A DNA stretch of 64,000 nucleotides, taken from Macrostomum lignano (Eukaryota). Position 1 is the stretch's first letter, and every line of letters starts with the position of its first letter. The translations under genes and the position numbers were made by a program. Below are positions 622 to 51,284 of this stretch, piece after piece. Below the pieces are notes generated by a model, which was not told where the DNA came from, searched no databases, and saw only the letters and a program-made list of their open reading frames with translations. The stretch lies in assembly GCA_002269645.1 (NCBI GenBank), contig NIVC01000464.1, positions 124,001-188,000 of the forward strand, read 5' to 3'.

Positions 622-18022
<17,401 letters not shown>

Positions 18023-25783: not shown

Positions 25784-27167
25784 TCACAAACGTTTCAGCG
25801 CCTTTTTAGTCTTGCTTTTAGCTGCATTGGCTCCGGCTGCGGTTCCAGTTGATGAGGCTGACGCTGCAGAGGGCTTCTTTGAGCTGTCGCTGCCAGATCC
25901 GTTCTCGTTGGAATCCTTCAGGCTGGACGGCGGTTTGGGATTTGAGATGGATTTTTAAGCTGGTGACTTAAATTTTGGATTTGGGATTAAGGTTTGGGAT
26001 TTGAGATGGATTCTTAAGCTGCTGACTTAGATTTGAGATTTTGGGATTAAGGTTTGGGATTTGAGATGGATTTTTAAGCTGGTGACTTAGATTTTGGATT
26101 TTGGGATTAATGTTTTGGATTTGAGATGGATTTTTAAGCTGGTGACTTAGATTTGGGATTTTGGAGTTTGGGGTTAGGTTTAGGATTTGAGGATTATGCT
26201 AGGGATTTGGGGTTAGGTTTGGGATTTGCGGATTAGATTTGGGAGTTCAGGATTATGCTATGGATTTGAAGATCAGGTCTGGGATTTGGAGATTAGGCTT
26301 GGGATTTAGGGATTAGGTTTGGGATTTGTGGATTAGATTTGGGATTTGGGATTAAGGTTTGGGATTTGAGATGGCTTTTTTAAGCTGGTGACTTATATTT
26401 GGGATTTTGGGATTTGGGGTTAGGTTTGGGATTTGAGGATTACGCTAGGGATTTGGAGATTAGGTTTGAAATTTGAGAATTCGTTTTGGGATTTGATGAT
26501 TATGCTAGGGATTTGGGGTTAAGTTTGGGATTTGGGAGTATGTTTGGGATTTGAGGATTAGATTTGGGATTTGAGGATTATGCTATGGATTTGGAGATTA
26601 GGTTTGGGATTTGGGAAATATGCTTAGACTTAAAATCATAACTGAATAGACTATGATGATTACTTAAACTCACATAGCAGCAGAGTCGCCGCCTTCTGTA
26701 CACTTTAACGCGTGAATCTCCGTGTAGAGTCGAGCCCGAGCAAAGTACTCAGAGTACTCTTCTAGCAAAAGTCGGCCAGCATCTTCATTTAAGGCTGACT
26801 CGGGATTAGGCACAATGAGCAGGCATTTAATCACTAGGAGAAGCTTCTTAAGCCCGGTGTCCGGTGTCCAATCCCGTTTGAGCGTGTTAACACAGATCTC
26901 CCCAGTCTGAGGTGCAATATTCGGATGAAATATCTTAGTGATAAAGTAGCCCTTCGGCGGCTCATTAGGATAGTTGGAACCCAGATGCAGCTTGATGTGA
27001 AAACTGCCGCCAGCGTAGGGTGTGTCAACAGGACCATCAATATAGGCCTGGATGTCTGCGAGGTTGGATTCATTGAACACAATTCTAATGCCTTCTGGTG
27101 GATGAAGCAGCAGTTCCTTCACTTCCTTTGACAGCTGCCTCACCACCGATGGCTGACAGTTTTCCAT
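25784..27167 (-). CDS. UBE2S: Ubiquitin-conjugating enzyme E2 S, 2 exons
   Basis: Exon 27167-26674 encodes the UBC fold ([44 protein letters not shown]). Donor AT|GTGAG joins acceptor CCAG|C at 25922; exon 2 ends [13 protein letters not shown]-stop (25784), the basic LRRL-type tail typical of UBE2S. Confidence 0.93.
25935..26630. repeat. Degenerate GGGATTT/GGATTAG-rich repeat, UBE2S intron
   Basis: Direct reading; irregular period. Confidence 0.8.
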
Positions 27168-33368: not shown

Positions 33369-34310
33369 TCAGCTGTCAAGATAGACTTCGGCCCGGATGA
33401 CATGCCCGGCAAGCTGCAGACGTCGCTTGCTCAGCAGGACAGAAGGCCGCGTCAGGTGCGCTCTCGCTGGTACGGGGAGTCGGTCATCTTGCTGCCAGGG
33501 CCGCGGCGGGCGCCGAACGCGGCACGAATCAGAGCCGTATGCGCCACATCGAGCTGCCTCTCGAGCGCCCAGTACAGGGTCGAGGGCGGTCTCGACAACA
33601 GCCTGGAACAGCTGCCATTGGAACCTAAAGCTGTCCAATAGAGCCTCTGAAAGCAGCTCCGCCCACAGATCGAAAGGCGGCCCAGGCCTTGCCGGCCGCG
33701 CCGTCTCCCAGGTCGTCGCTCACATCCGTCACCAGCCCGCTAAAGTAGAGGGGCTGACGGCACTTGGTGCACCGTCCCAGGGCCATCGTGCCGTCTCTGA
33801 GTCTTATCTTGGCGGGTAGATCGTGGGGAACTGTCAGCACCTCGGTATTTTTGGCGTTGATGACGAGGCCGACCCTTGCAGCCGCCACAATCAGGCCATC
33901 CAGCAGCCGTTGGGGCGCCTTCGGCCGTCGTAGACAGCATGCAGGGCGAGGTCGTCCGAGCTAGTAGCCGAGGAGGAACAGCCTCTTCTCCGGGTGTCGC
34001 CGACTGGTGTCGCCTTTGCAGTAGAAGGCCGTTCTCTGCTGTCGGCAGGCCGCCGCCTCCTGAGCACACAGTCCATCAGCAAAACAAAGAGGAGAAGGGC
34101 GCCAGAGTGTCACGGCCTGCAGCACTCCGGAGGTCGTGCTGAACAGGTCCGACGGTCCGTCGGCGTCGCTACCGCAGCGGTCGTGTCCTGGTACAGCGCC
34201 ATGTTTGCGAAGATCAGCTACTGCGGTACGGAGCACGTGAGGGAGCGCACCGCGGGCCACCGAGTCGAAAGCCTTGAGGAAGTCGACAAAGATTGATGAA
34301 ACTGTTTGAT
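33369..34310 (-). pseudogene. Decayed non-LTR (RTE-like) reverse transcriptase fragment
   Basis: Frameshifted pieces FVDFLKAFDSVARGALPHVL, DLFSTTSGVLQ, GLVINAKNTEVL, AWAAFRSV, RRLQLAGHVIRAE, typical of RTE-clade RT and its C-terminus. Confidence 0.7.
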
Positions 34311-35046
34311 GAAACGCAATGAAAATGCATAACTTTTTTCTTGGCGCCATGCAAGTCTCAGCTGCCCCAACAGAATATGATTGGATCATACCCATGCAGA
34401 ACACGTGCATGCAGTACATATACATGTACATATGTGTACATGTAATTATAAAGTACAAATAGATTTTACAAACGGAAACTGTAGATCTTTAATTTTAAAG
34501 GGCTTCAAAATAGCTAAGGCATTATAATTAGGTTCCCGTAAGAAATGAAATACATTATACTCGCGTGTATTTTAGCTTGTTACACGTACACTGTTAAAGT
34601 AAAAATAAATTGTAGTAACATCCATCTCCTTGGCTTGGACGCTGAGTTAAAGATTGTTTAGGCAGAATAATACATTTATGTATTTATAAAAGAAAAACTT
34701 TCAATATACTCGTTTGCTAACAAAAACTAGCAACAAAAATAGCACAAATAATTAACATACACTTAAAAATAGTTTAGCTTAATTTTACACAGAGAAGAAA
34801 GAGTCTTTTGACGACATGCTGACTGAGAAGTGAACGGGTTATTTAAAGTCTTCGATTAGCTAATGGTATTTACTGTTTGCTAGTAATGAGGCTGGTCCAA
34901 AAGGCCCGATTAAATAGCCGTCAGCCAACCATATTGTAATAATTTCCTTTAACTTAATGGCTAACAAACTTCAACAGCAGTTTTTTTTGCTAAATTCATT
35001 CTTGACCATACTTAGTCCGGATCCTGACAGTAACTTATTAGAATGT

Positions 35047-36719
35047 TCACGCGGTTTGTTTGTCAATACCAAGATAAGCTTTCGCTCCACCAGCGAGACC
35101 CGTTCTGTCGGGATCAATTGTTTGAGCTGTCGGATCACTTTTTCCGGATTTGGATAGAGCAATGCCAGCAGCTCCAGTAGCGGCCAAGCCGGTTGTGGCA
35201 GCGCCAGCACCTATGAAGCCGATTTTCTTTTTGTGTGGACCGATAGCCCCGCCCGCTCTTTTAAAGAAGCCTCCGCTCTTTTTGCAGGGCAGAAACGGAT
35301 TCTGGCAGCCGGGATTATCCAAGTCGGCGGACTTTTTTGATTTCCCCTTTTGAGCCGCACCGGCCTTTTTACCCACGGATTTCACCAGGCCGCCCTCGTT
35401 GCAGGGAAAAAAGGGATTTTTACACCCGGGATTATCCATGTCGGTAACGCTGGACTTCCTGTTTGCGTTGCCCGGCGCGTCGCCGGCTTTCTTAGCAGAT
35501 TTCAGCTTAAAAAACGATTTCGCTCGCGATTTCACTGCAAACAAGGATTGAATAAATTATAGCAATCACAGCTACTCTCACCAACCACAGCTGCTCTCAC
35601 CAATCACAGCCTGCTCTCACCAATCACAGCCTGCTCTCACCAATCACAGCTGCTCTCACCAATCACAGCTTCTCTCACCAATCACAGCTGCTCTCACCAA
35701 TCACAGCTGCTCTCACCAATCACAGCTGCTCTCACCAATCACAGCCTGCTCTCACCAATCACAGCCTGCTCTCACCAATCACAGCTGCTCTCACCAATCA
35801 CAGCTTCTCTCACCAATCACAGCTGCTCTCACCAATCACAGCCTGCTCTCACCAATCACAGCTGCTCTCACCAATCACAGCTGCTCTCACCAATCACAAC
35901 TGCTCTCACCAATCACAGCTTCTCTCACCAATCACAGCCTGCTCTCACCAATCACAGCTGCTCTCACCAATCACAGCCTGCTCTCACCAATCACAGCTGC
36001 TCTCACCAATCACAGCTTCTCTCACCAATCACAGCCTGCTCTCACCAATCACAGCTGCTCTCACCAATCACAGCTGCTCTCACCAATCACAGCTTCTCTC
36101 ACCAATCACAGCTGCTCTCACCAATCACAGCTTCTCTCACCAATCACAGCTGCTCTCACCAATCACAGCTGCTCTCACCAATCACAGCTGCTCTCACCAA
36201 TCACAGCCTGCTCTCACCAATCACAGCTGCTCTCACCAATCACAGCTTCTCTCACCAATCACAGCCTGCTCTCACCAATCACAGCCTGCTCTCACCAATC
36301 ACAGCTGCTCTCACCAATCACAGCTTCTCTCACCAATCACAGCTTCTCTCACCAATCACAGCTGCTCTCACCAATCACAGCTTCTCTCACCAATCACAGC
36401 TTCTCTCACCAATCACAGCCTGCTCTCACCAATCACAGCTGCTCTCACCAATCACAGCTTCTCTCACCAATCACAGCTTCTCTCACCAATCACAGCCTGC
36501 TCTCACCAATCACAGCTTCCCTCGACTTCACTTCCTACTAATAAAATTATTGAATTTCTCAGACATTCAATGTGCAAATTAATAATAAAGCATTATTTCC
36601 ATAAACTCGATAAACTCACATGATTTTACTGCTTTCGGGCAGCATTGGCCGCCGCTTGGAAACTGGCTGACAATCGTGAGCAGAATAAAGTAAATTGCTA
36701 TAAAGCTTTGAGTTCGCAT
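35047..36719 (-). CDS. Secreted cationic protein A (~195 aa), unknown family, with duplicated DNPGCxNPFxPC motif
   Basis: Exon 1 36719-36620 (MRTQSFIAIYFILLTIVSQFPSGGQCCPKAVKS, signal peptide), donor T|GTGAGT. Exon 2 35534-35047 after TTGCAG, phase 1, in frame with the 165-aa ORF of the track. Confidence 0.8.
35570..36520. repeat. 19/20 bp minisatellite (CCAATCACAGCTGCTCTCA), intron of gene A
   Basis: About 48 units. Confidence 0.95.
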
Positions 36720-37139: not shown

Positions 37140-38100
37140 CCGCTCTCTACTCTCTCGTCTCATCTCCTCTCTCTCCTCTCTTTTCTTTCCTTTCATCTCT
37201 CATCTCTTCTTTCCTCTCATCTCTTCTTTCATCTCATTTCTTTCTTCATCTCTCCTCTCATCTATCATCTCATCTCTTCTTTTCTTTCATCTCTCATTTC
37301 TCATCTTATCTATCCTCTTATCTCTTCTTTCCTCTCATCTCTCATCTCATTTATCCTCTTATCTCTTCTTTCCTCTCATCTCTCATCCCTCATCTCATCT
37401 ATCCTCTCATCTCTTCTTTCATCTCTCATCTCTTCTTTCATCTCATCCCTTCTTTCATCTCTCCTCTCATCTATCATCTCATCTCTTCTTTCATCTCATC
37501 CCTTCTTTCATCTCTCCTCTCATCTATCATCTCATCTCTTCTTTCATCTCATCCCTTCTTTCATCTCTCCTCTCATCTATCATCTCATCTCTTCTTTCAT
37601 CTCATCCCTTCTTTCATCTCTCCTCTCATCTATCATCTCATCTCTTCTTTCATCTCATCTCTTCTTTCATCTCTCCTCTCATTTATCCTCTCATCTCTTC
37701 TTTCCTTTCATCTCTCATCTCTCATCTCTCATCTCATCTATCCTCTTATCTCTTCTTCCTCTCATCTCTCATCCTTCATCTCATCTATCCTCTTATCTTA
37801 TCTTTCCTCTCATCTCTTCTTTCATCCCTCAACTCTTCTTTCATCTCTCATCTCTTCTTTCCTCATCTCCTCTTTCATCTCATTTCTTCTTTCATCTCTC
37901 CTCTCATCTATCATATCATCTCTTCTTTCCTTTCATCTCTCATCTCATTTATCCTCTCATCCCCTCTTTCCTTTCATCTCTCATATTATCTATCCTCTTA
38001 TCTCCGCTTTCCTTTCATATTTGATCTCATCTATACTCTTATCTCCTCTTTCCTTTAATCTCTCATCTCATCTATCCTCTTATCTTCTCCTTCCTCTTCT
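37140..38100. repeat. Pyrimidine-rich low-complexity (TCATC/TCT) tract between divergent genes A and B
   Basis: Direct reading. Confidence 0.9.
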
Positions 38101-38427
38101 AAATCTAAGATTCTAATGTCAGGCTGTTTTGATGACGCTGTAGGCTTTTTACAATAAATAATTTGACATAGGCTGTGTCAAAACACAATTTTAACAAGCC
38201 CACCTACTCTCAGTTTCTCCTGTTTGCTTCTGATCGCATTTTAGATGAGCGGCGTCTTTCTTAAGATGCCAATTTAAAATTGTCTATGGCAATTTATTGT
38301 CAAACCAACGAAATTTATTTATTGCCAACAAAAATTTTTCGTAATCTTCGTAGAAATATCGGTTTAATCTGTTCTTCAACAGCCCTACAGGAGTGTCTGT
38401 TTAAAAAATAACTTAACTGCAACCTAA

Positions 38428-40099
38428 ATGGGATGCATAAGATTAGCATTGCTATTTAGCATTGTGCTGGTGATCCTCATCGAACCTGGTGAAGGCTGTG
38501 TCAAGAAATTGAAGGCTTTGAAAGGTGGTAAGTAGTCAGTCTTGCAGTTGGCAATGAAATTGGTAAAACTTGAGACTGTTCGAATTCATACGGCCTTTTT
38601 TAACACGCTCGTACTGAGATCAACGCGGGAGGGAGCTGTCGTGCGATTCGGGCACAGAAAGTGTACATGCCTGATGATTAGACAGTCAAAGGGCCGCTGT
38701 ACACCCAAGGACAACTTAAGTAGAAGAACGCAACACTCGAAATCTAATGGTAAATATTTTGACGGCAACTTTTCGCCGAAAAATACACTACAGAGATAAG
38801 AGGATTTAATCTTTGTAGCACAAAAATTGTTATTGCTTTTGATAGGAGGCAGATCCAGTGTTCATATTTTGATATGTTGTGCCTTTTTTTATTGCTCTAT
38901 CGATATTCATAAAGCTTTTCGTCCAGAAATAGTTTTAAAGGAAGGTTTCACCGGAAAAATACATTAAGGAGATAGGAAATTTCACGATTTTCAACACTAA
39001 AACAGTGATTGGGTCTCTTAACAGTGTCAGAGAAAGTTCTAATCACACTATTTTGTGCCTCACATGCTGCTCTCACGACGCATTAATCGATTTTTCATGT
39101 TAAATTGGTCTGTCACTTGAAAAAAACGTTTAAAATAATTACAAGACCAATATAAAGGCGAAAAGTTGCCTTCAAAACATTTACCAATAGATTTCGAGTG
39201 AGGCGCGCTTGTGTACACCCTGTGTGAGGCGCGCTTGTGTACACCCTGTGTGAGGCGCGCTTGTGTACACCCTGTGTGAGGCGCGCTTGTTTACACCCTG
39301 AGTGAGGCGCGCTTGTGTACACCCTGTGTGAGGCGCGCTTGTGTACACCCTGTGTGAGGCGCGCTTGTGTACACCCTGTGTGAGGCGCGCTTGTGTACAC
39401 CCTGTGTGAGGCGCGCTTGTGTACACCCTGTGTGAGGCGCGCTTGTGTACACCCTGTGTGAGGCGCGCTTGTGTACACCCTGTGTGAGGCGCGCTTCTGT
39501 ACACCCTGTGTGAGGCGCGCTTGTGTACACCCTGTGTGAGGCGCGCTTGTGTACACCCTGTGTGAGGCGCGCTTGTGTACACCCTGTGTGAGGCGCGCTT
39601 GTGTACACCCTGTGTGAGGCGCGCTTCTGTACACCCTGTGTGAGGCGCGCTTGTGTACACCCTGTGTGAGGCGCGCTTCTGTACACCCTGTGTGAGGCGC
39701 GCTTGTGTACACCCTGTGTGAGGCGCGCTTGCATGCAGAATCGCCTCAGCGCTGCGGCTGTGGGAAGATGTCGCCGAAGCGTATCCCAATTATTATTGCT
39801 ATTATTTTCTAAATGCCACTGGGCATTCATTCATTTCATTCTAACAAAACTTCGCGCCCCCAGCTTTCAAGAGAGTCGGCAAGGTGTTCAAAATAGCCAG
39901 ACGCCCAAAAGCCGCCAAAGTCATTGCGAATTCTGCGGACGACGTTGGCAAGGTGGCCAAGAAGTCCAAGAGCTTCAGCACGGCGCGCTCGCTCCTCATT
40001 GGTGGCACGGTTGGAGGTGCGGCACTGGGGGGCGCCGTGTACGTGGGGGAAAAAGAGAAGAAAAAAGGCATGAGCAGCGGTTCGTACGTCACCCACTAA
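38428..40099 (+). CDS. Secreted cationic peptide B (~111 aa), amphipathic helix plus glycine-zipper segment
   Basis: Exon 1 38428-38527 (MGCIRLALLFSIVLVILIEPGEGCVKKLKALKG), donor G|GTAAGT. Exon 2 39864-40099 after CCCCCAG: AFKRVGKVFKIARRPKAAKVIANSADDVGKVAKKSKSFSTARSLLIGGTVGGAALGGAVYVGEKEKKKGMSSGSYVTH-stop. Confidence 0.85.
39197..39730. repeat. 26 bp minisatellite (GAGGCGCGCTTGTGTACACCCTGTGT), intron of gene B
   Basis: About 20 near-perfect units. Confidence 0.95.
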
Positions 40100-40609
40100 G
40101 AGACCCTGCACAGCCATGCATGAGGAAATAATGTGTACTTTGCGGTATTCTTATACTCGAAATACTCGTTGCGTATTCAATTGTTAAGTATATAGCCAAT
40201 TTACCAAAAATTTTTCTTTTAAAATTTAATTGTAAATCAGCACAGTTTCTTTTAAATTAGATCCAGATCTACGTAGTTTGCCAAAATTGCACTTTGAGCA
40301 GTTGAAACGTGTTTTTGTAAATTTTGTTTTACTGGATGTTATTTTTACCGGTATGCCATGGGCAGAGGACTCGTGACTTTAGTTTTAACATATAATATAA
40401 ATAAAGCTTCTTAGACAGTTTCAGTTGTGCTTCACAGATTATATCTCATATATTCTTATAGTGACTATGTACTCAATTCTTTTAAGCTTGCACAGTAGTC
40501 TTCTAACTTAAGTTTCGTTTTTATTTGGTTCTCCACTTATGGCTCTGCACTCGAGGACCTCGCTGCCACGCCTGTCTACCATCCTGCGACTTTAATTGGC
40601 GGGTCGCGT

Positions 40610-40985
40610 AATCACCCACCTTGGTAATCACCCACCTTGGTAATCACCCACCTTGGTAATCACCCTACTTGGTAATCACCCACCTTGGTAATCACCCACC
40701 TTGGTAATCACCCACCTTGGTAATCACCCACCTTGGTAATCACCCACCTTGGTAATCGTCCACCTTGGTAATCATCCACCTTGGTAACCACCCACCTTGG
40801 TAATCACCCACCTTGGTAATCACCCACCTTGGTAATCACCCTACTTGGTAATCACCCACCTTGGTAATCACCCACCTTGGTAATCACCCACCTTGGTAAT
40901 CACCCACCTTGGTAATCACCCACCTTGGTAATCGTCCACCTTGGTAATCATCCACCTTGGTAACCACCCACCCATCACCATCCGC
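40610..40985. repeat. 16 bp minisatellite (TTGGTAATCACCCACC) between genes B and C
   Basis: Direct reading. Confidence 0.93.
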
Positions 40986-41400
40986 CTTGGTGATCAGAAT
41001 AAAATAAACCACAGCGTAATAATGTCATTTATTCGAATATAAACATTTAAATGCATTGCAAAGGTGGTCTTTGCTTAAGTTTTACTTAATTCTATCTCGA
41101 ACAAAACTGCAAGACGACTAATTAAAATTATACTGGTGCAGTGAATAAGAGCTGATTGTTTGCTGCAGTATTTTGTTACTTTTTTAATAAAGGGACTTTT
41201 TTATTATTATTCGGCAGTCAGATCATGTCTATGGTAATCTACTATCAACCGAAATGCTTGAAAATCGCTAAAAATTTGATTGCCGAAAAAAGCAACTTGA
41301 GCCTCGATGCATCACCTGCCGGTTGTAGTTGACATCTTGGTAGAAATATCACTTCAATAGAGCAGTCATACAAGAGAGTAGAGAATAACTGGGACCTATA

Positions 41401-43119
41401 ATGGGTTACATAAGATTAGCATTGTTATTTACCATTGTGCTGGTGATCCTCATCGAACCTGGCGATGGCTGCTTTAGGAAATTGAAAGGTGGTAAGTAGT
41501 CAGCCTTGCTTATGTGCCTTAAAATTAGAAATTATACTATAATGCATAAGAGAATTACCCAATTGGCATTAGTATCAAAATTGGTTTACAGTAGTGCTCT
41601 TGCGGAATCACCCGGTTGGTTCAGGGCTCATGGGGGGAATCACCCGGTTGGTTCAGGGCTCATGAGGAATCACCCAGTTGGTTCAGGGCTCATGAGGAAT
41701 CACCCAGTTGGTTCAGGGCTCATGAGGAATCACCCAGTTGGTTCAGGGCTCATGAGGAATCACCCGGTTGGTTCAGGGCTCATGAGGAATCACCCAGTTG
41801 GTTCAGGGCTCATGAGGAATCACCCAGTTGGTTCAGGGCTCATGAGGGGAATCACCCAGTTGGTTCAGGGCTCATGAGGAATCACCCAGTTGGTTCAGGG
41901 CTCATGAGGAGTCACCCAGTTGGTTCAGGGCTCATGAGGAATAACCAAGTTGGTTCAGGGCTCATGAGGAGTCACCCAGTTGGTTCAGGGCTCATGAGGA
42001 ATCACCCAGTTGGTTCAGGGCTCATGAGGAGTCACCCAGTTGGTTCAGGGCTCATGAGGAATCACCCAGTTGGTTCAGGGCTCATGAGGAGTCACCCAGT
42101 TGGTTCAGGGCTCATAGGGAATCACCCAGTTGGTTCAGAGCTCATAGGGAATCACCTAGTAGGTTCAGACCTCTAGAGGAATCACCCAGTTGGTTCAGGG
42201 CTCATGAGGAGTCACCCAGTTGGTTCAGGGCTCATAGGGAATCACCCAGTTGGTTCAGAGCTCATAGGGAATCACCTAGTAGGTTCAGACCTCTAGAGGA
42301 ATCACCCGGTTAATTGATTCAGGGCTCATAGGGAATCACCCATTTGGTTCGGGGCGTATGGGGGAGTTGCCGAGTGGCCTCGAATGCGCTGCTAAGATTT
42401 AATTCTGAAAGAAAGAATGCTTATATCATAGGCCGAAAAGTTTTGATATTGGCGCACTTAAATGTGCTCGGGACTTTGTGCTCTTTGCTATGAATATTGA
42501 TGATGATTGATTATCCCTGCCGTAATGGAAATATGTGCAACCGACAGCACAGCCGCAGCTATCTGAAGGCTGCGTGCGGCTGTTCAGTCCAAGGACTGGG
42601 GGGTCGCCACACACAGCCTCAATTACCCCAGCTAATGCTGGCACTCATTTTACAGCTGGGTGAACTGAAGCTATGCAGAGGTTAAGTGTCTTGCTCAAGG
42701 ACACAAATTGTTCCAGTAGGATCAGGAATCGAACCCCCGACCTTGAACCACTAGGCTACAGTCCCCTGTGAATATTATTACAACTATAGTATAGGCAGGC
42801 ACTGATCCGAAACTGAGAGCCGCAACCCCAACCCGCTTCTAATTCGCACGCAGCGGTCAAGGCGGTTGGCAGGCGCGTCGGTCGAGTATTCGGACGCGGA
42901 AAGAAGGCGCCGAAAGCGGCCGCCGATATTGCCCAAAGCGCCGAGAAGGTGGGCAAAACAGCTAAAAAAGGCCCCAGTGCGACAAAAACAGCCGGAATCA
43001 GTGTTGGCACTGGAATGCTTGCCGCCGGTACCATTGGTGCTGGCAGTTTGGCCTACACAAATAACAAGAAGAATCGGATGCAAAGCGAGAGCGCTCCGCC
43101 TCCTGTCACATACAAATAG
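41401..43119 (+). CDS. Secreted cationic peptide C (~118 aa), paralog of B
   Basis: Exon 1 41401-41491 (MGYIRLALLFTIVLVILIEPGDGCFRKLKG) is nearly identical at DNA level to exon 1 of B; donor G|GTAAGT. Exon 2 42854-43119 after CACGCAG: AVKAVGRRVGRVFGRGKKAPKAAADIAQSAEKVGKTAKKGPSATKTAGISVGTGMLAAGTIGAGSLAYTNNKKNRMQSESAPPPVTYK-stop. This frame is absent from the ORF track. Confidence 0.85.
41605..42345. repeat. 30 bp minisatellite (GGAATCACCCAGTTGGTTCAGGGCTCATGA), intron of gene C
   Basis: Direct reading. Confidence 0.93.
42525..42757 (-). mobile_element. tRNA-headed SINE, family 2, copy 2 (intron of gene C)
   Basis: Shares ATGTGCAACCGACAGC-CAGCCGCAGCTAT, CTCAATTACCCCAGCTAA-GCTGG and GAATCGAACCCCCGACCTT with the reverse complement of 172-365. 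Confidence 0.7.
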
Positions 43120-44086: not shown

Positions 44087-44635
44087 ATGGTGCTATTGAA
44101 ATGGTCGATGAAATGCCTGTTGCTGGCAGTCATTCTGCTAGCTGTGCTGCCGGACTATAGCAGCGGATGCAAAGCGGCGGTCAATAAGGGTGAGTTGGCA
44201 ATTCCAACCGCATGTTTTCATTCAGTAAAAACAGTAAAAAGGACTATAAGAGGGGAATTTCATGCCATTAACAGCCGTGATGACAAACCCTTAAAAAGTC
44301 AGTCAGTTTATGAACAGACTCTGACAAAACACACTTTTCCCCATGCTATATTAACAGTGAAAGAGTTCTACAAGTCTTACACGCTAAAGAAAAAGCCGAA
44401 AGAGGAAACTGACGAAGCCGAAAAGAAGAAAAAGCAGGAGGCAGAAGAAAAAGAATACAAGAAGAAATTGGACGAGGCCAAAGCGAAAATGCGACAGCGA
44501 AACAAACAGCTCCTTGAAACCATAGCAACCGAGCGCACCAAGCAGGAGTCTCTGCTGGAGCAGCGGAAGAAGAAAGGCGAGAAGAAGATCGCAGGCATTG
44601 TGGCCACCACCACTGGTACGCAAATAATCCTCTAG
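44087..44635 (+). CDS. Secreted Lys/Glu-rich coiled-coil protein D (~126 aa spliced), unknown family
   Basis: Signal peptide MVLLKWSMKCLLLAVILLAVLPDYSSG followed by C. Probable intron 44190-44357 (G|GTGAGT ... AACAG|TG, 168 nt, no stop). Exon 2 encodes KEFYKSYTLKKKPKEE...EYKKKLDEAKAKMRQRNKQLL...GIVATTTGTQIIL-stop. Confidence 0.8.
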   Translation: MVLLKWSMKCLLLAVILLAVLPDYSSGCKAAVNKGELAIPTACFHSVKTVKRTIRGEFHAINSRDDKPLKSQSVYEQTLTKHTFPHAILTVKEFYKSYTLKKKPKEETDEAEKKKKQEAEEKEYKKKLDEAKAKMRQRNKQLLETIATERTKQESLLEQRKKKGEKKIAGIVATTTGTQIIL

Positions 44636-45062: not shown

Positions 45063-45955
45063 AGCACCAGGATATTTAGCACCAGTGGTTTTAGCACCAG
45101 TGGCTTTAGCACCAGGGGCTTTAGCACCAGTGGCTTTAGCACCAGTGGTTTTAGCACCAGTGGTTTTAGCACCAGGGGCTTTAGCACCAGGGGCTTTAGC
45201 ACCAGGGGCTTTAGCACCAGGGGCTTTAGCACCAAGGGCTTTAGCACCAGGGGCTTTAGCACCAGGGGCTTTAGCACCAGGGGCTTTAGCACCAGGGGCT
45301 TTAGCACCAGGGGCTTTAGCACCAGGGGCTTTAGCACCAATGGTTTTAGCACCAGTGGCTTTAGCACCAGGGACTTTAGCACCAGTGGCTTTAGCACCAG
45401 TGGCTTTAGCACCAGTGGCTTTAGCACCAGTGGCTTTAGCTCCAGTGGCTTTAGCACCAATGGTTTTAGCACCAGTGGCTTTAGCACCAGGGACTTTAGC
45501 ACCAGTGGCTTTAGCACCAGTGGCTTTAGCACCAGTGGTTTTAGCACCAGTGGTTTTAGCACCAGTGGCTTTAGCACCAGTGGTTTTAGCACCAGTGGTT
45601 TTAGCACCAGTGGCTTTAGCACCAAGTGCTTTAGCACCAGTGGTTTTAGCACCAAATGCTTCAGCACCAGGGGCTTTAGCACCAGGGGCTTTAGCACCAG
45701 GGGCTTTAGCACCAGGGGCTTTAGCACCAGGGGCTTTAGCACCAGGGGCTTTAGCACCAGGGGCTTTAGCACCAGGGGCTTTAGCACCAGGGGCTTTAGC
45801 ACCAGGGGCTTTAGCACCAGGGGCTTTAGCACCAGGGGCTTTAGCACCAGGGGCTTTAGCACCAGGGGCTTTAGCACCAGGGGCTTTAGCACCAGGGGCT
45901 TTAGCACCAGGGGCTTTAGCACCAGGGGCTTTAGCACCAGGGGCTTTAGCACCAG
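45063..45955. repeat. 15 bp minisatellite (GCTTTAGCACCAGGG/GTG)
   Basis: About 59 units; source of the GAKAP, LAPGA and LVLKP ORFs. Confidence 0.95.
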
Positions 45956-46500: not shown

Positions 46501-46609
46501 AAGCACATCCGGAAGTACAACACAATTAGAATAAATAAAATGAAGGTATAAAAGTGGGAACATTAAGTCAATATTTGCTAGTATGAACTCGAAATGTGAG
46601 TAAAGGAAA

Positions 46610-47780
46610 CGACAGTGTACGTCAATATTGTGGGTCAATATCGTACGTCAATATCAGTCACTTCGCCCTGGAGTGCACCCTGGCCAAAGTCCTAACACCA
46701 TCCTTCGAAACCGCATTCAACCCATCATCAACCAGAGGCTTCTCAATATCCAGAACGGCTTCCAACCTGGACGGTCAACAGCAAAAACAAGTCGCTGCGG
46801 TCCGGTGCATCATAGACACCTGCAAGACTCGCCAAAAGGCGGTGTCAATTGTTTTTGCAGATTTGTGCAAAGCTTTTGACTCAGTCAGCCGGGCGGCCAG
46901 GCCATTGCGTAGCTCCTCCAGCAGCATGGAGTTTCTCAGATGCTGGTCCAGGCGATCATGGACCTCTACAGCTCATCCAAGGCGCTTTCGTCTAGACTGA
47001 CCACGGCCCTAAAGCTGAATTGACAACCACTTCCGCAAAGCGACACCTGTTTGTATTCGTCATCCTGATCGACTTCGTCATGCGGTTGGCTCTGCGCGAT
47101 GAAGACGGCTATGAAGTGGTGCTTCGCCGTAGCTCCCGCTTTGCCTGCGTCAAGCCGACCTGCCTCGCCTGCGCCGACGACCTGGCGCTGACCTGCTGCA
47201 GTCTCAAAGCTGCGCAGACGGCGGTGAGTCGGCGGACCAACGAGGGGAAGCGCGTGGGGCTCCACATCAACTACGGCAAGGCAGAGGTGCTGCATGTTGG
47301 CATTGCCAACTCTCCACTGCTGCTTCTGCCGGACAGCAACACCATCGCCCTGTGCAACCAGTTCAAGTATCTGGGGTGTCCTGGTCTCTGACCCGGATGT
47401 CATTGTCAACAACCGCAAGCACAGCCTGGTGGGCCTCCCACCTTCTCCGCTCCATCTTCAACTACTGGCTCGCCACCGACAGCCTGAACGTCGCCCTATT
47501 CCGCTCGGCAGTTGAGACGGTGCTGACCTACGGGCTGCTGGAAGCTGTTCCCATGACTGCCACTCGTCAGGCGAGCTTGGAGGGCTGCCATCGCCACCTC
47601 ATGCACAATGCCCTGGGCATCCGGTTCCCGAGCGCGTGAGCAACGCCGAGCTGGCGGCCCGGACCCGCGTGGTCGCAGAGACGACGCCAGATGTTGATCG
47701 GCCTCTGCCTGCGTGCCCACACACGGGGCACCGGGCCCCAGCTCACCGACCTGCTGCTCAGCCACCACTCTGACGGACAC
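46610..47780 (+). pseudogene. Decayed non-LTR (RTE-like) reverse transcriptase fragment
   Basis: ILRNRIQPIINQRLLNIQNGFQPGRST, SIVFADLCKAFDSVSR, LFVFVILIDFVMR, LACADDLAL, GLHINYGKAEVL, FKYLG, LFRSAVETVLTYG, spread over several frames. Related to 33369-34310. Confidence 0.75.
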
Positions 47781-48467: not shown

Positions 48468-48974
48468 ATGGCATTTTTCAGATACCTAGCATTGCCGGCA
48501 ATCTTGTTCGCGGTTTTTGTACAATACAGCGAAGGATGCAAGAAACCGGCTCCTGTGCAGCAGGGTGAGTGGGTCAAAGTTGTGCCGCCGTTACTATTAT
48601 GTTATTATTGGACCAGCGTCTTTAAAGTAGCAATCTGTAGTACCTGATTCCATGCTTATTGAACCCGCCCCACAGTTCAGAAGAATGTTGAAGCAAACTA
48701 TGAGCTAGAACAACGGCTGGCGCGAGAAAAGCACGAGCGTGACGAGGTCGAGAGGTTGCGGCGAAAAAACGAACAAACGAGGAAAGAAGAGCAATACAAG
48801 AAGGAATTGAAGGAGGCAAAAGCGAAAATGAAGGAGCGCAAAGAGAAGATTCTAAACTTGGTCGCGGCCCAGCGATCATACCAGATTGCTCTGATGAAGA
48901 AGCGCAAAAAGAACGGGGCTCAGAAAATATACGGTGTCGACGCGGAGGTAACAGGCACCCAGCTTGTCATATGA
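48468..48974 (+). CDS. Secreted Lys/Glu-rich coiled-coil protein E (~131 aa), paralog of D
   Basis: Exon 1 48468-48564 (MAFFRYLALPAILFAVFVQYSEGCKKPAPVQQ), donor G|GTGAGT. Exon 2 48676-48974 after CCCACAG: VQKNVEANYELEQRLAREK...EQYKKELKEAKAKMKERKEKILNLVAAQRSYQIALMKKRKKNGAQKIYGVDAEVTGTQLVI-stop, which aligns with the C-terminal half of D. Confidence 0.82.
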
Positions 48975-50702: not shown

Positions 50703-51284
50703 TTATTTCGACAGGCTGTTCAGAAGGCCGAGCAGCCGGTCCAGTGTGCTCACAATGGCATCAGTCTTGGCGCAGTCCGAACTTTCCAGCAGGCGAGCCT
50801 GATAGTAATCAATCCGGTCAAGAGTGGCCGTCCGCAGTCTCTCTTCAACACAGACTCGGTCCTTGCCAGCGGCAGCCTGTGTTTGGCTGCGCGATGACGC
50901 CTGCGAGCTGGCAACGGAGGCGGCGGCTGCGGCGGCCTCTCTGGCGTGGACTCGGGCGGCCGACTCCGACTGAGCCGGGTCGTCTTTGCTAACGTCGGAC
51001 TCGAGCTCGCGACAGGCGATGCAATAGTTGCCACCGCCGTTGCTCACCTCCATGAGGATGGTGCCGCAGTCGGGGCACACGTGGTCCAGCATTTTCCAGC
51101 CTTTGAGCAGGTACTCGCCCATCCGTTTGGCGATCTTGTCCGAGCGCTCGCGGCGAGCTTTCAAAACTTTCTGCTCCGCCTCGGTTGGCGGGCGCCACTC
51201 GGCATCGAAGCTGGCGTCGCCATTGTCGGCAGTTGATGATGAAGATGCGGCTGCTTGTTCGCGGAGTAGACTGCGAAAATCCAT
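50703..51284 (-). CDS. ZNRD2: Zinc ribbon protein SSSCA1/ZNRD2 (autoantigen p27 family), single coding exon
   Basis: RRERSDKIAKRMGEYLLKGWKMLDHVCPDCGTILM...YCIACRE (CxxC...CxxC) is the SSSCA1 signature. ATG start, stop at 50703. Confidence 0.88.
   Translation of the reverse strand: MDFRSLLREQAAASSSSTADNGDASFDAEWRPPTEAEQKVLKARRERSDKIAKRMGEYLLKGWKMLDHVCPDCGTILMEVSNGGGNYCIACRELESDVSKDDPAQSESAARVHAREAAAAAASVASSQASSRSQTQAAAGKDRVCVEERLRTATLDRIDYYQARLLESSDCAKTDAIVSTLDRLLGLLNSLSK

Follow-up and report, generated by a model that had tools for sequence, protein, structure and literature searches.

Two divergent orphan paralogues of the flatworm Macrostomum lignano with the layout of cationic amphipathic host-defence peptides

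What kind of protein is encoded by two small neighbouring genes of the flatworm Macrostomum lignano, here called B and C, that have so far been annotated as hypothetical? Both lie in a 64,000-nucleotide stretch of contig NIVC01000464.1 (assembly GCA_002269645.1; hereafter the window), animal DNA with GT-AG introns and many minisatellites. We found that the two paralogues have one layout in common, made up of a signal, a cationic amphipathic helix, a Pro hinge and a Gly/Ala-rich hydrophobic segment, and that they carry class features of linear cationic amphipathic alpha-helical host-defence peptides, namely a signal-like N-terminus, a charge of +17 and an amphipathic helix. An earlier note on this DNA had proposed this overall layout for B and C, and it is real in both paralogues. 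Our leading, still tentative, interpretation is that B and C may be secreted membrane-active peptides of the host-defence type. Secretion, processing, membrane permeabilisation and an antimicrobial role are all properties that we infer, and the support for this interpretation is purely physicochemical in nature.

Gene models and architecture of B and C

Only two GT/AG-spliced models, each with a phase-1 intron, yield the protein sequences quoted for B and C in the earlier note: B joins 38428-38527 to 39864-40099 and encodes 111 amino acids, and C joins 41401-41491 to 42854-43119 and encodes 118. Both products match M. lignano hypothetical proteins at NCBI with 100% identity over 100% of their length (BOX15_Mlig005534g3 for B and BOX15_Mlig014360g3 for C). 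Since the M. lignano annotation was built from a genome-guided RNA-seq transcriptome (PMC5730564), the two genes are transcribed. Their identifiers were not found in the searchable text of the literature or of its supplements, for example PMC7336406, PMC5816591 and PMC5730564, for which supplement text was partial. The parts of the two genes are as follows.

38428-38527, plus strand: exon 1 of B, encoding the predicted signal peptide MGCIRLALLFSIVLVILIEPGEG and the first 10 mature residues, CVKKLKALKG, and ending in phase 1
38528-39863, plus strand: intron of B (GTAAGT...CAG), holding a 26-bp minisatellite of 20.5 copies at 39198-39731
39864-40099, plus strand: coding part of exon 2 of B, stop codon included, encoding the rest of cationic helix 1, the Pro hinge, cationic helix 2, the Gly/Ala-rich segment LLIGGTVGGAALGGAVYVG and the tail EKEKKKGMSSGSYVTH
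41401-41491, plus strand: exon 1 of C, encoding the predicted signal peptide MGYIRLALLFTIVLVILIEPGDG and the mature residues CFRKLKG, and ending in phase 1
41492-42853, plus strand: intron of C, holding a 30-bp minisatellite of 25 copies at 41596-42355 and, on the minus strand near 42719-42737, an element resembling a tRNA T-arm
42854-43119, plus strand: coding part of exon 2 of C, stop codon included, encoding cationic helix 1, the KKAP hinge, cationic helix 2, the Gly/Ala-rich segment ISVGTGMLAAGTIGAGSLA and the tail NNKKNRMQSESAPPPVTYK

The N-terminus of both proteins is signal-like, with a short basic start, 13 hydrophobic residues, a Pro-Gly-x-Gly motif and small residues at positions -1 and -3. 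N-myristoylation of the MGC start was considered and ruled out, given that C has MGY at this place and that a strong hydrophobic core comes next. Counted from the predicted cleavage before Cys24, after ...PG(E/D)G, the mature proteins comprise 88 amino acids in B and 95 in C. Mature B has 21 Lys and Arg residues and 4 Asp and Glu residues, mature C has 20 and 3, and the net charge is +17 in each; this recount agrees exactly with the figures given before. The first 24-25 mature residues of both proteins hold 10 Lys or Arg residues and zero acidic ones, and each mature protein has a single Cys, located at its N-terminus.

Two Lys/Arg-rich segments are present in each mature protein, and in all four the hydrophobic periodicity peaks at 100-105 degrees, the alpha-helical value. 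The maximal 18-residue hydrophobic moment is 0.66 in B and 0.73 in C, compared on one scale with 0.66 in cecropin A, 0.51 in magainin 2 and 0.54 in pleurocidin. Set against composition-preserving shuffles, the moment of residues 1-25 is reached by 0.3% of them in C (p = 0.003) and by 5% in B (p = 0.05), and that of the second cationic segment gives p <= 0.002 in both proteins. A hydrophobic-moment calculation had been named as the check on the proposed cationic amphipathic helix; with moments in the range of cecropin and a helical periodicity, the proposal is borne out.

Between the cationic segments lies a Pro, at mature position 25 in B and 27 in C. AlphaFold models place a helix, a break, a second helix, a further break and then a long helix, with the first break at the Pro, at a predicted local distance difference test (pLDDT) score of 52 for B with its signal peptide and 60 for mature C. 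The hinge proposed for both paralogues is therefore present as a Pro in each and as a helix break in the low-confidence structure predictions. The helix positions conserved between B and C are hydrophobic and basic (K27, L28, K29, R37, V38, G39, V41, F42, P48, K49, A50, A51, I54, A55, V61, G62, K63, A65, K66 and K67). Because the conserved mature residues are these helix positions together with the motif of the C-terminal tail, we consider that the architecture is under purifying selection.

This pattern of conservation also bears on whether B and C could be prohormone or neuropeptide precursors, from which small signalling peptides would be released by cleavage at dibasic sites. In favour of such precursors, both proteins start with a signal peptide and abound in KK, KR and RR pairs, part of which stand after Gly (VGRR and FGRGKK in C). 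However, neither the dibasic nor the Gly-basic sites are conserved in position between B and C, the conserved residues follow helical periodicity instead, and the proteins have no repeated peptide units and no match to a Pfam neuropeptide family. We regard a precursor of this kind as very improbable.

The Gly/Ala-rich segment and comparison with known peptides

The C-terminal half of the layout had been described as a glycine zipper. The pattern [GAS]xxxGxxx[GAST] is the transmembrane glycine zipper motif that Kim et al. reportedly described in 2005. A true GxxxGxxxG is found in B (GTVGGAALG), and the hydrophobic segment of C holds just one match to the relaxed pattern. Counts of this pattern are 2 in B, 1 in C and 1 in A, a neighbouring gene described below; the share of shuffled versions of each segment with at least as many matches is 38%, 81% and 84%, respectively. 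Thus, the zipper is clear in B and weak in C, and in neither does its count rise above what composition provides. The motif may be a by-product of composition, and 'Gly/Ala-rich weakly hydrophobic segment' is the safer description.

The weakness of its hydrophobicity is consistent across methods. The Kyte-Doolittle means over 19 residues are 1.27-1.53 for the segment in B, C and A; its summed Hessa free energy is +3.5 to +4.3 kcal/mol, against -2.9 for glycophorin A, and its summed Wimley-White octanol free energy is +2.8 to +4.8 kcal/mol, against -9.3 for glycophorin A, the Hessa and Wimley-White figures being simple sums and not the output of the full position-weighted predictor. On all three scales the segment falls below the thresholds for a transmembrane (stop-transfer) anchor. 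Since it is too weakly hydrophobic for stop-transfer, full translocation and secretion are more likely. After the segment comes a C-terminal tail that is basic, rich in Ser and kept between B and C as KK..M.S.S...VT[HY]. Anchoring by glycosylphosphatidylinositol was ruled out, since 16-21 hydrophilic residues follow the hydrophobic segment.

It is conceivable, if unlikely, that B and C are instead small single-pass type I membrane proteins, in which the cationic helices would lie outside or in the lumen, the Gly/Ala segment would span the bilayer and the basic, Ser-rich tail would be cytoplasmic, possibly with oligomerisation through small-xxx-small contacts. The uncharged segment is 19-21 residues long and is directly followed by a Lys cluster (EKEKKKG in B, NNKKNR in C) and the conserved tail; AlphaFold draws, at low confidence, one long helix across the segment in C (residues 48-87); and gene A is arranged likewise. 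The failure of the segment to reach transmembrane thresholds on three scales argues against this topology, as does the fact that it is the least conserved part of B and C, in which three Gly alone are invariant. Moreover, genomic copies of the locus differ within the segment (A to G, G to V and A to G in C), and the flank that would lie outside is as basic as the one that would be cytoplasmic.

Searches for relatives returned nothing from other organisms. With B, C and A as queries, a word-indexed search across 5.8 billion proteins gave M. lignano proteins alone, namely B and C themselves, a chimeric entry (P0002) and a 99%-identical copy of A. When 1.84 billion representative proteins were searched exhaustively with a HMMER profile, the hits were again limited to B, C and P0002. 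P0002, a UniProt/UniRef entry from an older assembly, is a chimera in which part of exon 2 of B is joined to exon 2 of C and then runs into a frameshift; current Pfam and NCBIfam do not bear out the name that UniProt gives to this entry, 'Gly-zipper_YMGG domain-containing protein'. A Pfam scan of B and C at E <= 10 found no cecropin, glycine-zipper, neuropeptide or other match, and at the same threshold the isolated hydrophobic segments, the C variant, A and P0002 matched no glycine-zipper model in Pfam; A and P0002 likewise gave no cecropin or other hit. There was no match in NCBIfam or among PDB sequences, and 0 of 600 pattern matches in JGI metagenome contigs were confirmed. As far as these searches reach, the B/C family is without detectable relatives outside M. 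lignano, in line with the novelty that the earlier note had claimed for it. A recent bacterial origin of B and C was rejected in view of their introns and of the zero bacterial protein matches.

Pairwise comparison with characterised peptides brought one flatworm system to the fore. The peptides mesco-1, -2 and -3 were found by genome mining of the cestode Mesocestoides corti, in a study that calls parasite-derived peptides underexplored (PMC11546468). Their precursors run from a signal peptide through a cationic mature region to a C-terminal region, the genes are intronless, the mature peptides measure about 40 amino acids and bear a C-terminal disulfide loop (Cys-x4-Cys), and synthetic mesco-2 (FFRRIGRAFSRVGRGIGRGFRQLGRLMPRGNYKICLGRCP) kills bacteria at 0.5-2 uM via membrane permeabilisation (PMC11546468). 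Residues 2-29 of mature C align with residues 2-30 of mesco-2 (FFRRIGRAFSRVGRGIGRGF...) with one single-residue gap and with FR[RK][IL]...VGR.[VI]GR.F in common (score 45, z = 4.3, composition-preserving shuffle p ~0.002); for B against mesco-2 the shuffle p is 0.03, with AF[KS]RVG[KR] in common. Styelin D (p 0.004-0.03) and LL-37 (p 0.01, full-length C) also beat most shuffles against C; mesco-2 is the strongest match to C in the pairwise test, yet for this reason not a unique one. Cecropin A, cecropin P1, magainin and pleurocidin scored no better against B and C than shuffles did. In addition to their flatworm origin, the mesco peptides resemble B and C in the order of the precursor, in their Gly/Arg-rich amphipathic character and in a helix-breaking Gly/Pro region. 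The two differ in the placement of Cys, which forms a C-terminal loop in mesco and stands singly at the N-terminus in B and C; the latter also possess a further amphipathic helix and a Gly/Ala-rich hydrophobic segment.

The layout had been called cecropin-type. Like the cecropins (insect cecropins, Ascaris cecropin P1 and the anisaxins; PF00272), B and C have a cationic amphipathic helix at the N-terminus, then a Gly/Pro hinge and, towards the C-terminus, a helix of greater hydrophobicity; they also have a comparable hydrophobic moment and are made with a signal peptide. In contrast to them, mature B and C measure 88-95 amino acids instead of 31-39, insert an extra amphipathic helix between the N-terminal and the hydrophobic helices, carry a C-terminal tail, and lack an N-terminal Trp and an amidation signal while having an N-terminal Cys. 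With no match to Pfam Cecropin, the wrong length and an additional helix, the label is one of analogy alone. Bacterial Gly-zipper proteins (Gly-zipper_YMGG, Gly-zipper_Omp, Rick_17kDa_Anti) provide another parallel; what B and C have in common with them is a signal that ends in ...G|C and is followed by a Gly-rich hydrophobic stretch such as IGGTVGGAALGG. B and C, however, are intron-containing animal genes, match none of these profiles and have a motif count no higher than composition gives.

Divergence of the paralogues and the surrounding gene cluster

The DNA of B and C is unevenly conserved. The signal-coding parts are identical at 63 of 69 positions (91%) and the whole of exon 1 at 81 of 91, apart from a 9-nt indel, whereas exon 2 is identical at 146 of 232 (63%), against ~58% for intron ends and 3' flanks, which are effectively unrelated. 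The near identity of the signal DNA beside a diverged mature exon, first pointed out in the earlier note, is therefore correct as an observation. Its interpretation as the mark of a defence family, with a conserved signal and a fast-evolving mature region, fares less well. The dN/dS comparison that had been proposed as a check, run by the Nei-Gojobori method, gives a synonymous divergence (dS) of 0.20 and a nonsynonymous divergence (dN) of 0.06 in the signal region; in the mature region the proportion of synonymous differences (pS) is 0.78, which is saturated, and exceeds the nonsynonymous proportion (pN) of 0.42.

A conserved signal joined to a hypervariable mature region is known from frog dermaseptin-type precursors and cone-snail conopeptides. 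B and C resemble these in having a conserved signal exon (91%, dS 0.20) and a diverged mature exon (63%, pS 0.78), and differ from them in comprising two paralogues, in a pN below pS and in a conservation that reaches non-coding flanks. The conserved block extends beyond the coding sequence into the first 18 nt of the intron and into several upstream blocks, the following of which were located.

38281-38303, plus strand: TGTCTATGGCAATTTATTGTCAA, block upstream of B shared with C, candidate promoter or 5' untranslated region element
38349-38360, plus strand: CGTAGAAATATC, second block upstream of B shared with C, likewise a candidate promoter or 5' untranslated region element
41226-41248, plus strand: TGTCTATGGTAATCTACTATCAA, block upstream of C matching that of B
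41339-41350, plus strand: GGTAGAAATATC, second block upstream of C matching that of B

Within the window, the 23-mer is confined to the regions that precede B and C; chance alone would be expected to give 0 matches. Being restricted to these two genes within the window, it gives no sign of regulation shared across the whole cluster, and the 12-mer GGTAGAAATATC shows no enrichment. From these patterns, B and C are old tandem duplicates with a 5' block that either is much 'younger' or has been held constant in its nucleotide sequence. This block would be explained at least as well by gene conversion, or by selection acting on promoter, 5' untranslated region, signal and splice donor, as by diversifying selection.

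The genome also offers a comparison between copies of the locus. B and C belong to a five-gene cluster that is present three times in the assembly (NIVC01000464.1, NIVC01004000.1 and NIVC01001374.1), as fits the known redundancy of the DV1 genome (PMC5730564); the copies on NIVC01000464.1 and NIVC01004000.1 are ~99% identical outside repeats. The reading frames of B and C are intact in 3 of 3 genomic copies. All changes in the two genes between these copies lie in exon 2; 6 are nonsynonymous and 0 synonymous, an excess that is suggestive and not significant. In B, EK changes to VN directly after the hydrophobic segment, and the changes in C (G70S, A93G, G94V and A97G) lie mostly within it.

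These data speak to the possibility that B and C, although transcribed, are young open reading frames with no function, and that their antimicrobial-like composition arose by chance. Such an origin would agree with their orphan status and with a very repeat-rich region, in which the introns of A, B and C each hold a minisatellite. Nevertheless, paralogues saturated at synonymous sites have kept their reading frames, architecture, splice sites and promoter blocks, with pN below pS, and all three genomic copies are intact. There is, in our judgement, hardly any room for this explanation.

The cluster runs in the order A 35047-36719 (minus strand), B, C, D 44087-44635 (plus strand) and E 48468-48974 (plus strand). 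The three genes other than B and C are as follows.

35047-36719, minus strand: A, 195 amino acids, exons 36719-36620 and 35534-35047
44087-44635, plus strand: D, 126 amino acids, exons 44087-44189 and 44358-44635, with a signal, a Cys, a phase-1 intron and a Lys/Glu-rich helical region
48468-48974, plus strand: E, 131 amino acids, exons 48468-48564 and 48676-48974

All five genes have one exon-1 design in common, consisting of a signal peptide, a Cys at the predicted cleavage site, 6-10 more residues and a phase-1 intron, after which comes one coding exon; the exception is A, in which the Cys stands one residue past the predicted cleavage, as a Cys-Cys pair (QCC). The domain order of A is like that of B and C, with a signal, QCC, a Lys-rich region and a Gly/Ala-rich segment IGFIGAGAATTGLAATGAA. 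Its exon 2 (35047-35534, minus strand) encodes, ahead of that segment, two D(M/L)DNPGC(K/Q)NPF(F/L)PC repeats between Lys-rich stretches, and each repeat copy could possibly form a small disulfide loop. Nonetheless, A as a true paralogue of B and C was rejected, the profile comparison giving a probability of 0.4% and only architecture and gene structure being common, and the word-indexed search of 5.8 billion proteins found no homologue of A outside M. lignano. D and E are paralogous to each other (42% identity, E = 6e-22), are rich in Lys and Glu with a low amphipathic moment, and end in TGTQ(I/L)(I/V)(L/I). They are probably secreted coiled-coil proteins; they had no match to Pfam at the curated threshold.

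The cluster brings up a further alternative, namely that B and C are non-lytic secreted gland proteins, for instance of mucus, rhabdites or adhesive organs, eggshell or seminal fluid, whose charge would bind polyanions or surfaces. Five small secreted Lys-rich proteins encoded side by side with one exon-1 design, two of which (D and E) are unlike antimicrobial peptides, would suit this role, as would promoter blocks common to B and C alone, which fit a specialised cell type. B and C are also lineage-restricted, as many flatworm gland and reproductive proteins are, and reproduction-related genes evolve rapidly in Macrostomum (PMC7336406, PMC5977470). Yet the strict amphipathic periodicity, kept in two diverged paralogues, would be unneeded for simple polyanion binding, and B and C lack the structure rich in Tyr or 3,4-dihydroxyphenylalanine (DOPA), rich in Cys or repetitive that is typical of adhesives. 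We consider a gland role of this kind to be improbable, although it deserves to be kept in mind.

The window around the cluster contains many repeats. The intron of A holds a minisatellite of 19 bp x 50 copies (35563-36517), and arrays outside introns include 16 bp x 23 between B and C (40608-40972), 15 bp x 60 after D (45063-45955) and a CT-rich array upstream of B (37150-38095); minisatellite copy numbers vary between the genomic copies of the cluster. In the intron of C, on the minus strand at ~42540-42770, a perfect tRNA T-arm-like sequence, GGGGTTCGATTCCTGATCC, is found at 42719-42737. This stretch looks like a fragment of a tRNA-derived short interspersed nuclear element, and searches of the region for non-coding RNA found no Rfam family and, with ARAGORN, no tRNA. 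Open reading frame fragments at ~46600-47400 (plus strand) and 33961-34458 (minus strand) carry a motif resembling reverse transcriptase, F(A/V)D(L/F)(C/L)KAFDSV, and look like decayed copies of a non-long-terminal-repeat retrotransposon beside the cluster. Two conserved flanking genes were recognised: an intronless open reading frame resembling a ubiquitin-conjugating enzyme at 26670-27167 (minus strand), with UQ_con annotated at the matching place in another cluster copy, and a member of the Auto_anti-p27 family at 50703-51284 (minus strand). Further away, at 1000-5900 and 9700-13000, very long simple or tandem repeats give rise, in several frames, to spurious open reading frames that span hundreds of codons, for example with QCLSDVSA repeats.

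A possible membrane-active family and its meaning for flatworms

If B and C are indeed host-defence-type peptides, the 23-residue signal peptide would be removed after ...PG(E/D)G, leaving a polypeptide of 88 or 95 residues with a net charge of +17 that starts with Cys. This polypeptide would form two Lys/Arg-rich amphipathic helices with a Pro hinge between them, then a Gly/Ala-rich weakly hydrophobic helix and a short conserved tail. The cationic amphipathic helices could bind anionic (microbial) membranes electrostatically and lie in the interface, while the Gly/Ala-rich helix would insert and self-associate, with the result that the bilayer is permeabilised. The N-terminal Cys may, in addition, give disulfide-linked dimers.

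Several of our observations weigh against this model. The mature length of 88-95 amino acids is far above that of typical linear antimicrobial peptides, and B and C have no obvious conserved processing site for the release of a short peptide. The conserved tail would suit the cytoplasmic tail of a membrane protein. Diversifying selection is unsupported by the dN/dS comparison, because synonymous sites are saturated and pN lies below pS, and the AlphaFold models of B and C score too low in confidence for a comparison of folds to be informative. With D and E coiled-coil-like and low in amphipathic moment, the entire cluster is not obviously antimicrobial. The likeness to mesco-2 is short, Gly/Arg-rich and marginal after correction for 18 comparisons of N-terminal segments (36 with full-length sequences); the match is absent from the database-wide profile search, and the mesco genes are intronless where B and C have a phase-1 intron.

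The link to the tapeworm peptides can be drawn more or less tightly. Because the match is marginal, the mesco genes are intronless and their products have a C-terminal disulfide loop, we take mesco as a functional resemblance, with a possible distant homology, and not as evidence of membership in one family. A bolder proposal would place B and C, as long members of ancestral type, in a pore-forming host-defence family spread across flatworms, from which the mesco peptides would also have arisen. In it, the N-terminal Cys common to the whole cluster would be functional and would either dimerise or be N-acylated, as an N-terminal Cys is in Hedgehog and Spitz. We think this proposal quite unlikely to hold in full.

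M. lignano serves as a transgenic model flatworm that regenerates. In the literature searched, no antimicrobial peptide was found to be reported from this species, and the one flatworm paper on such peptides concerns a tapeworm (PMC11546468). Since the genes were already annotated as hypothetical proteins, the novelty here is not one of sequence; it consists in proposing a function for an orphan family and in defining its cluster. Should B and C turn out to be small proteins of a membrane or a gland, the locus would be an ordinary lineage-specific gene cluster. If our preferred reading, that of membrane-active host-defence-type peptides, is correct, they would form a new family inside a well-known functional class. 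As membrane-active proteins, B and C would provide M. lignano with a tractable innate-immune effector that has a defined promoter, and would bring a new scaffold, long and made of three helices, to the helical antimicrobial peptides, with a possible link to tapeworms worth testing. Should a flatworm-wide pore-forming family prove true, B and C would belong to an innate-immune effector family that is the first to be defined in a free-living model flatworm.

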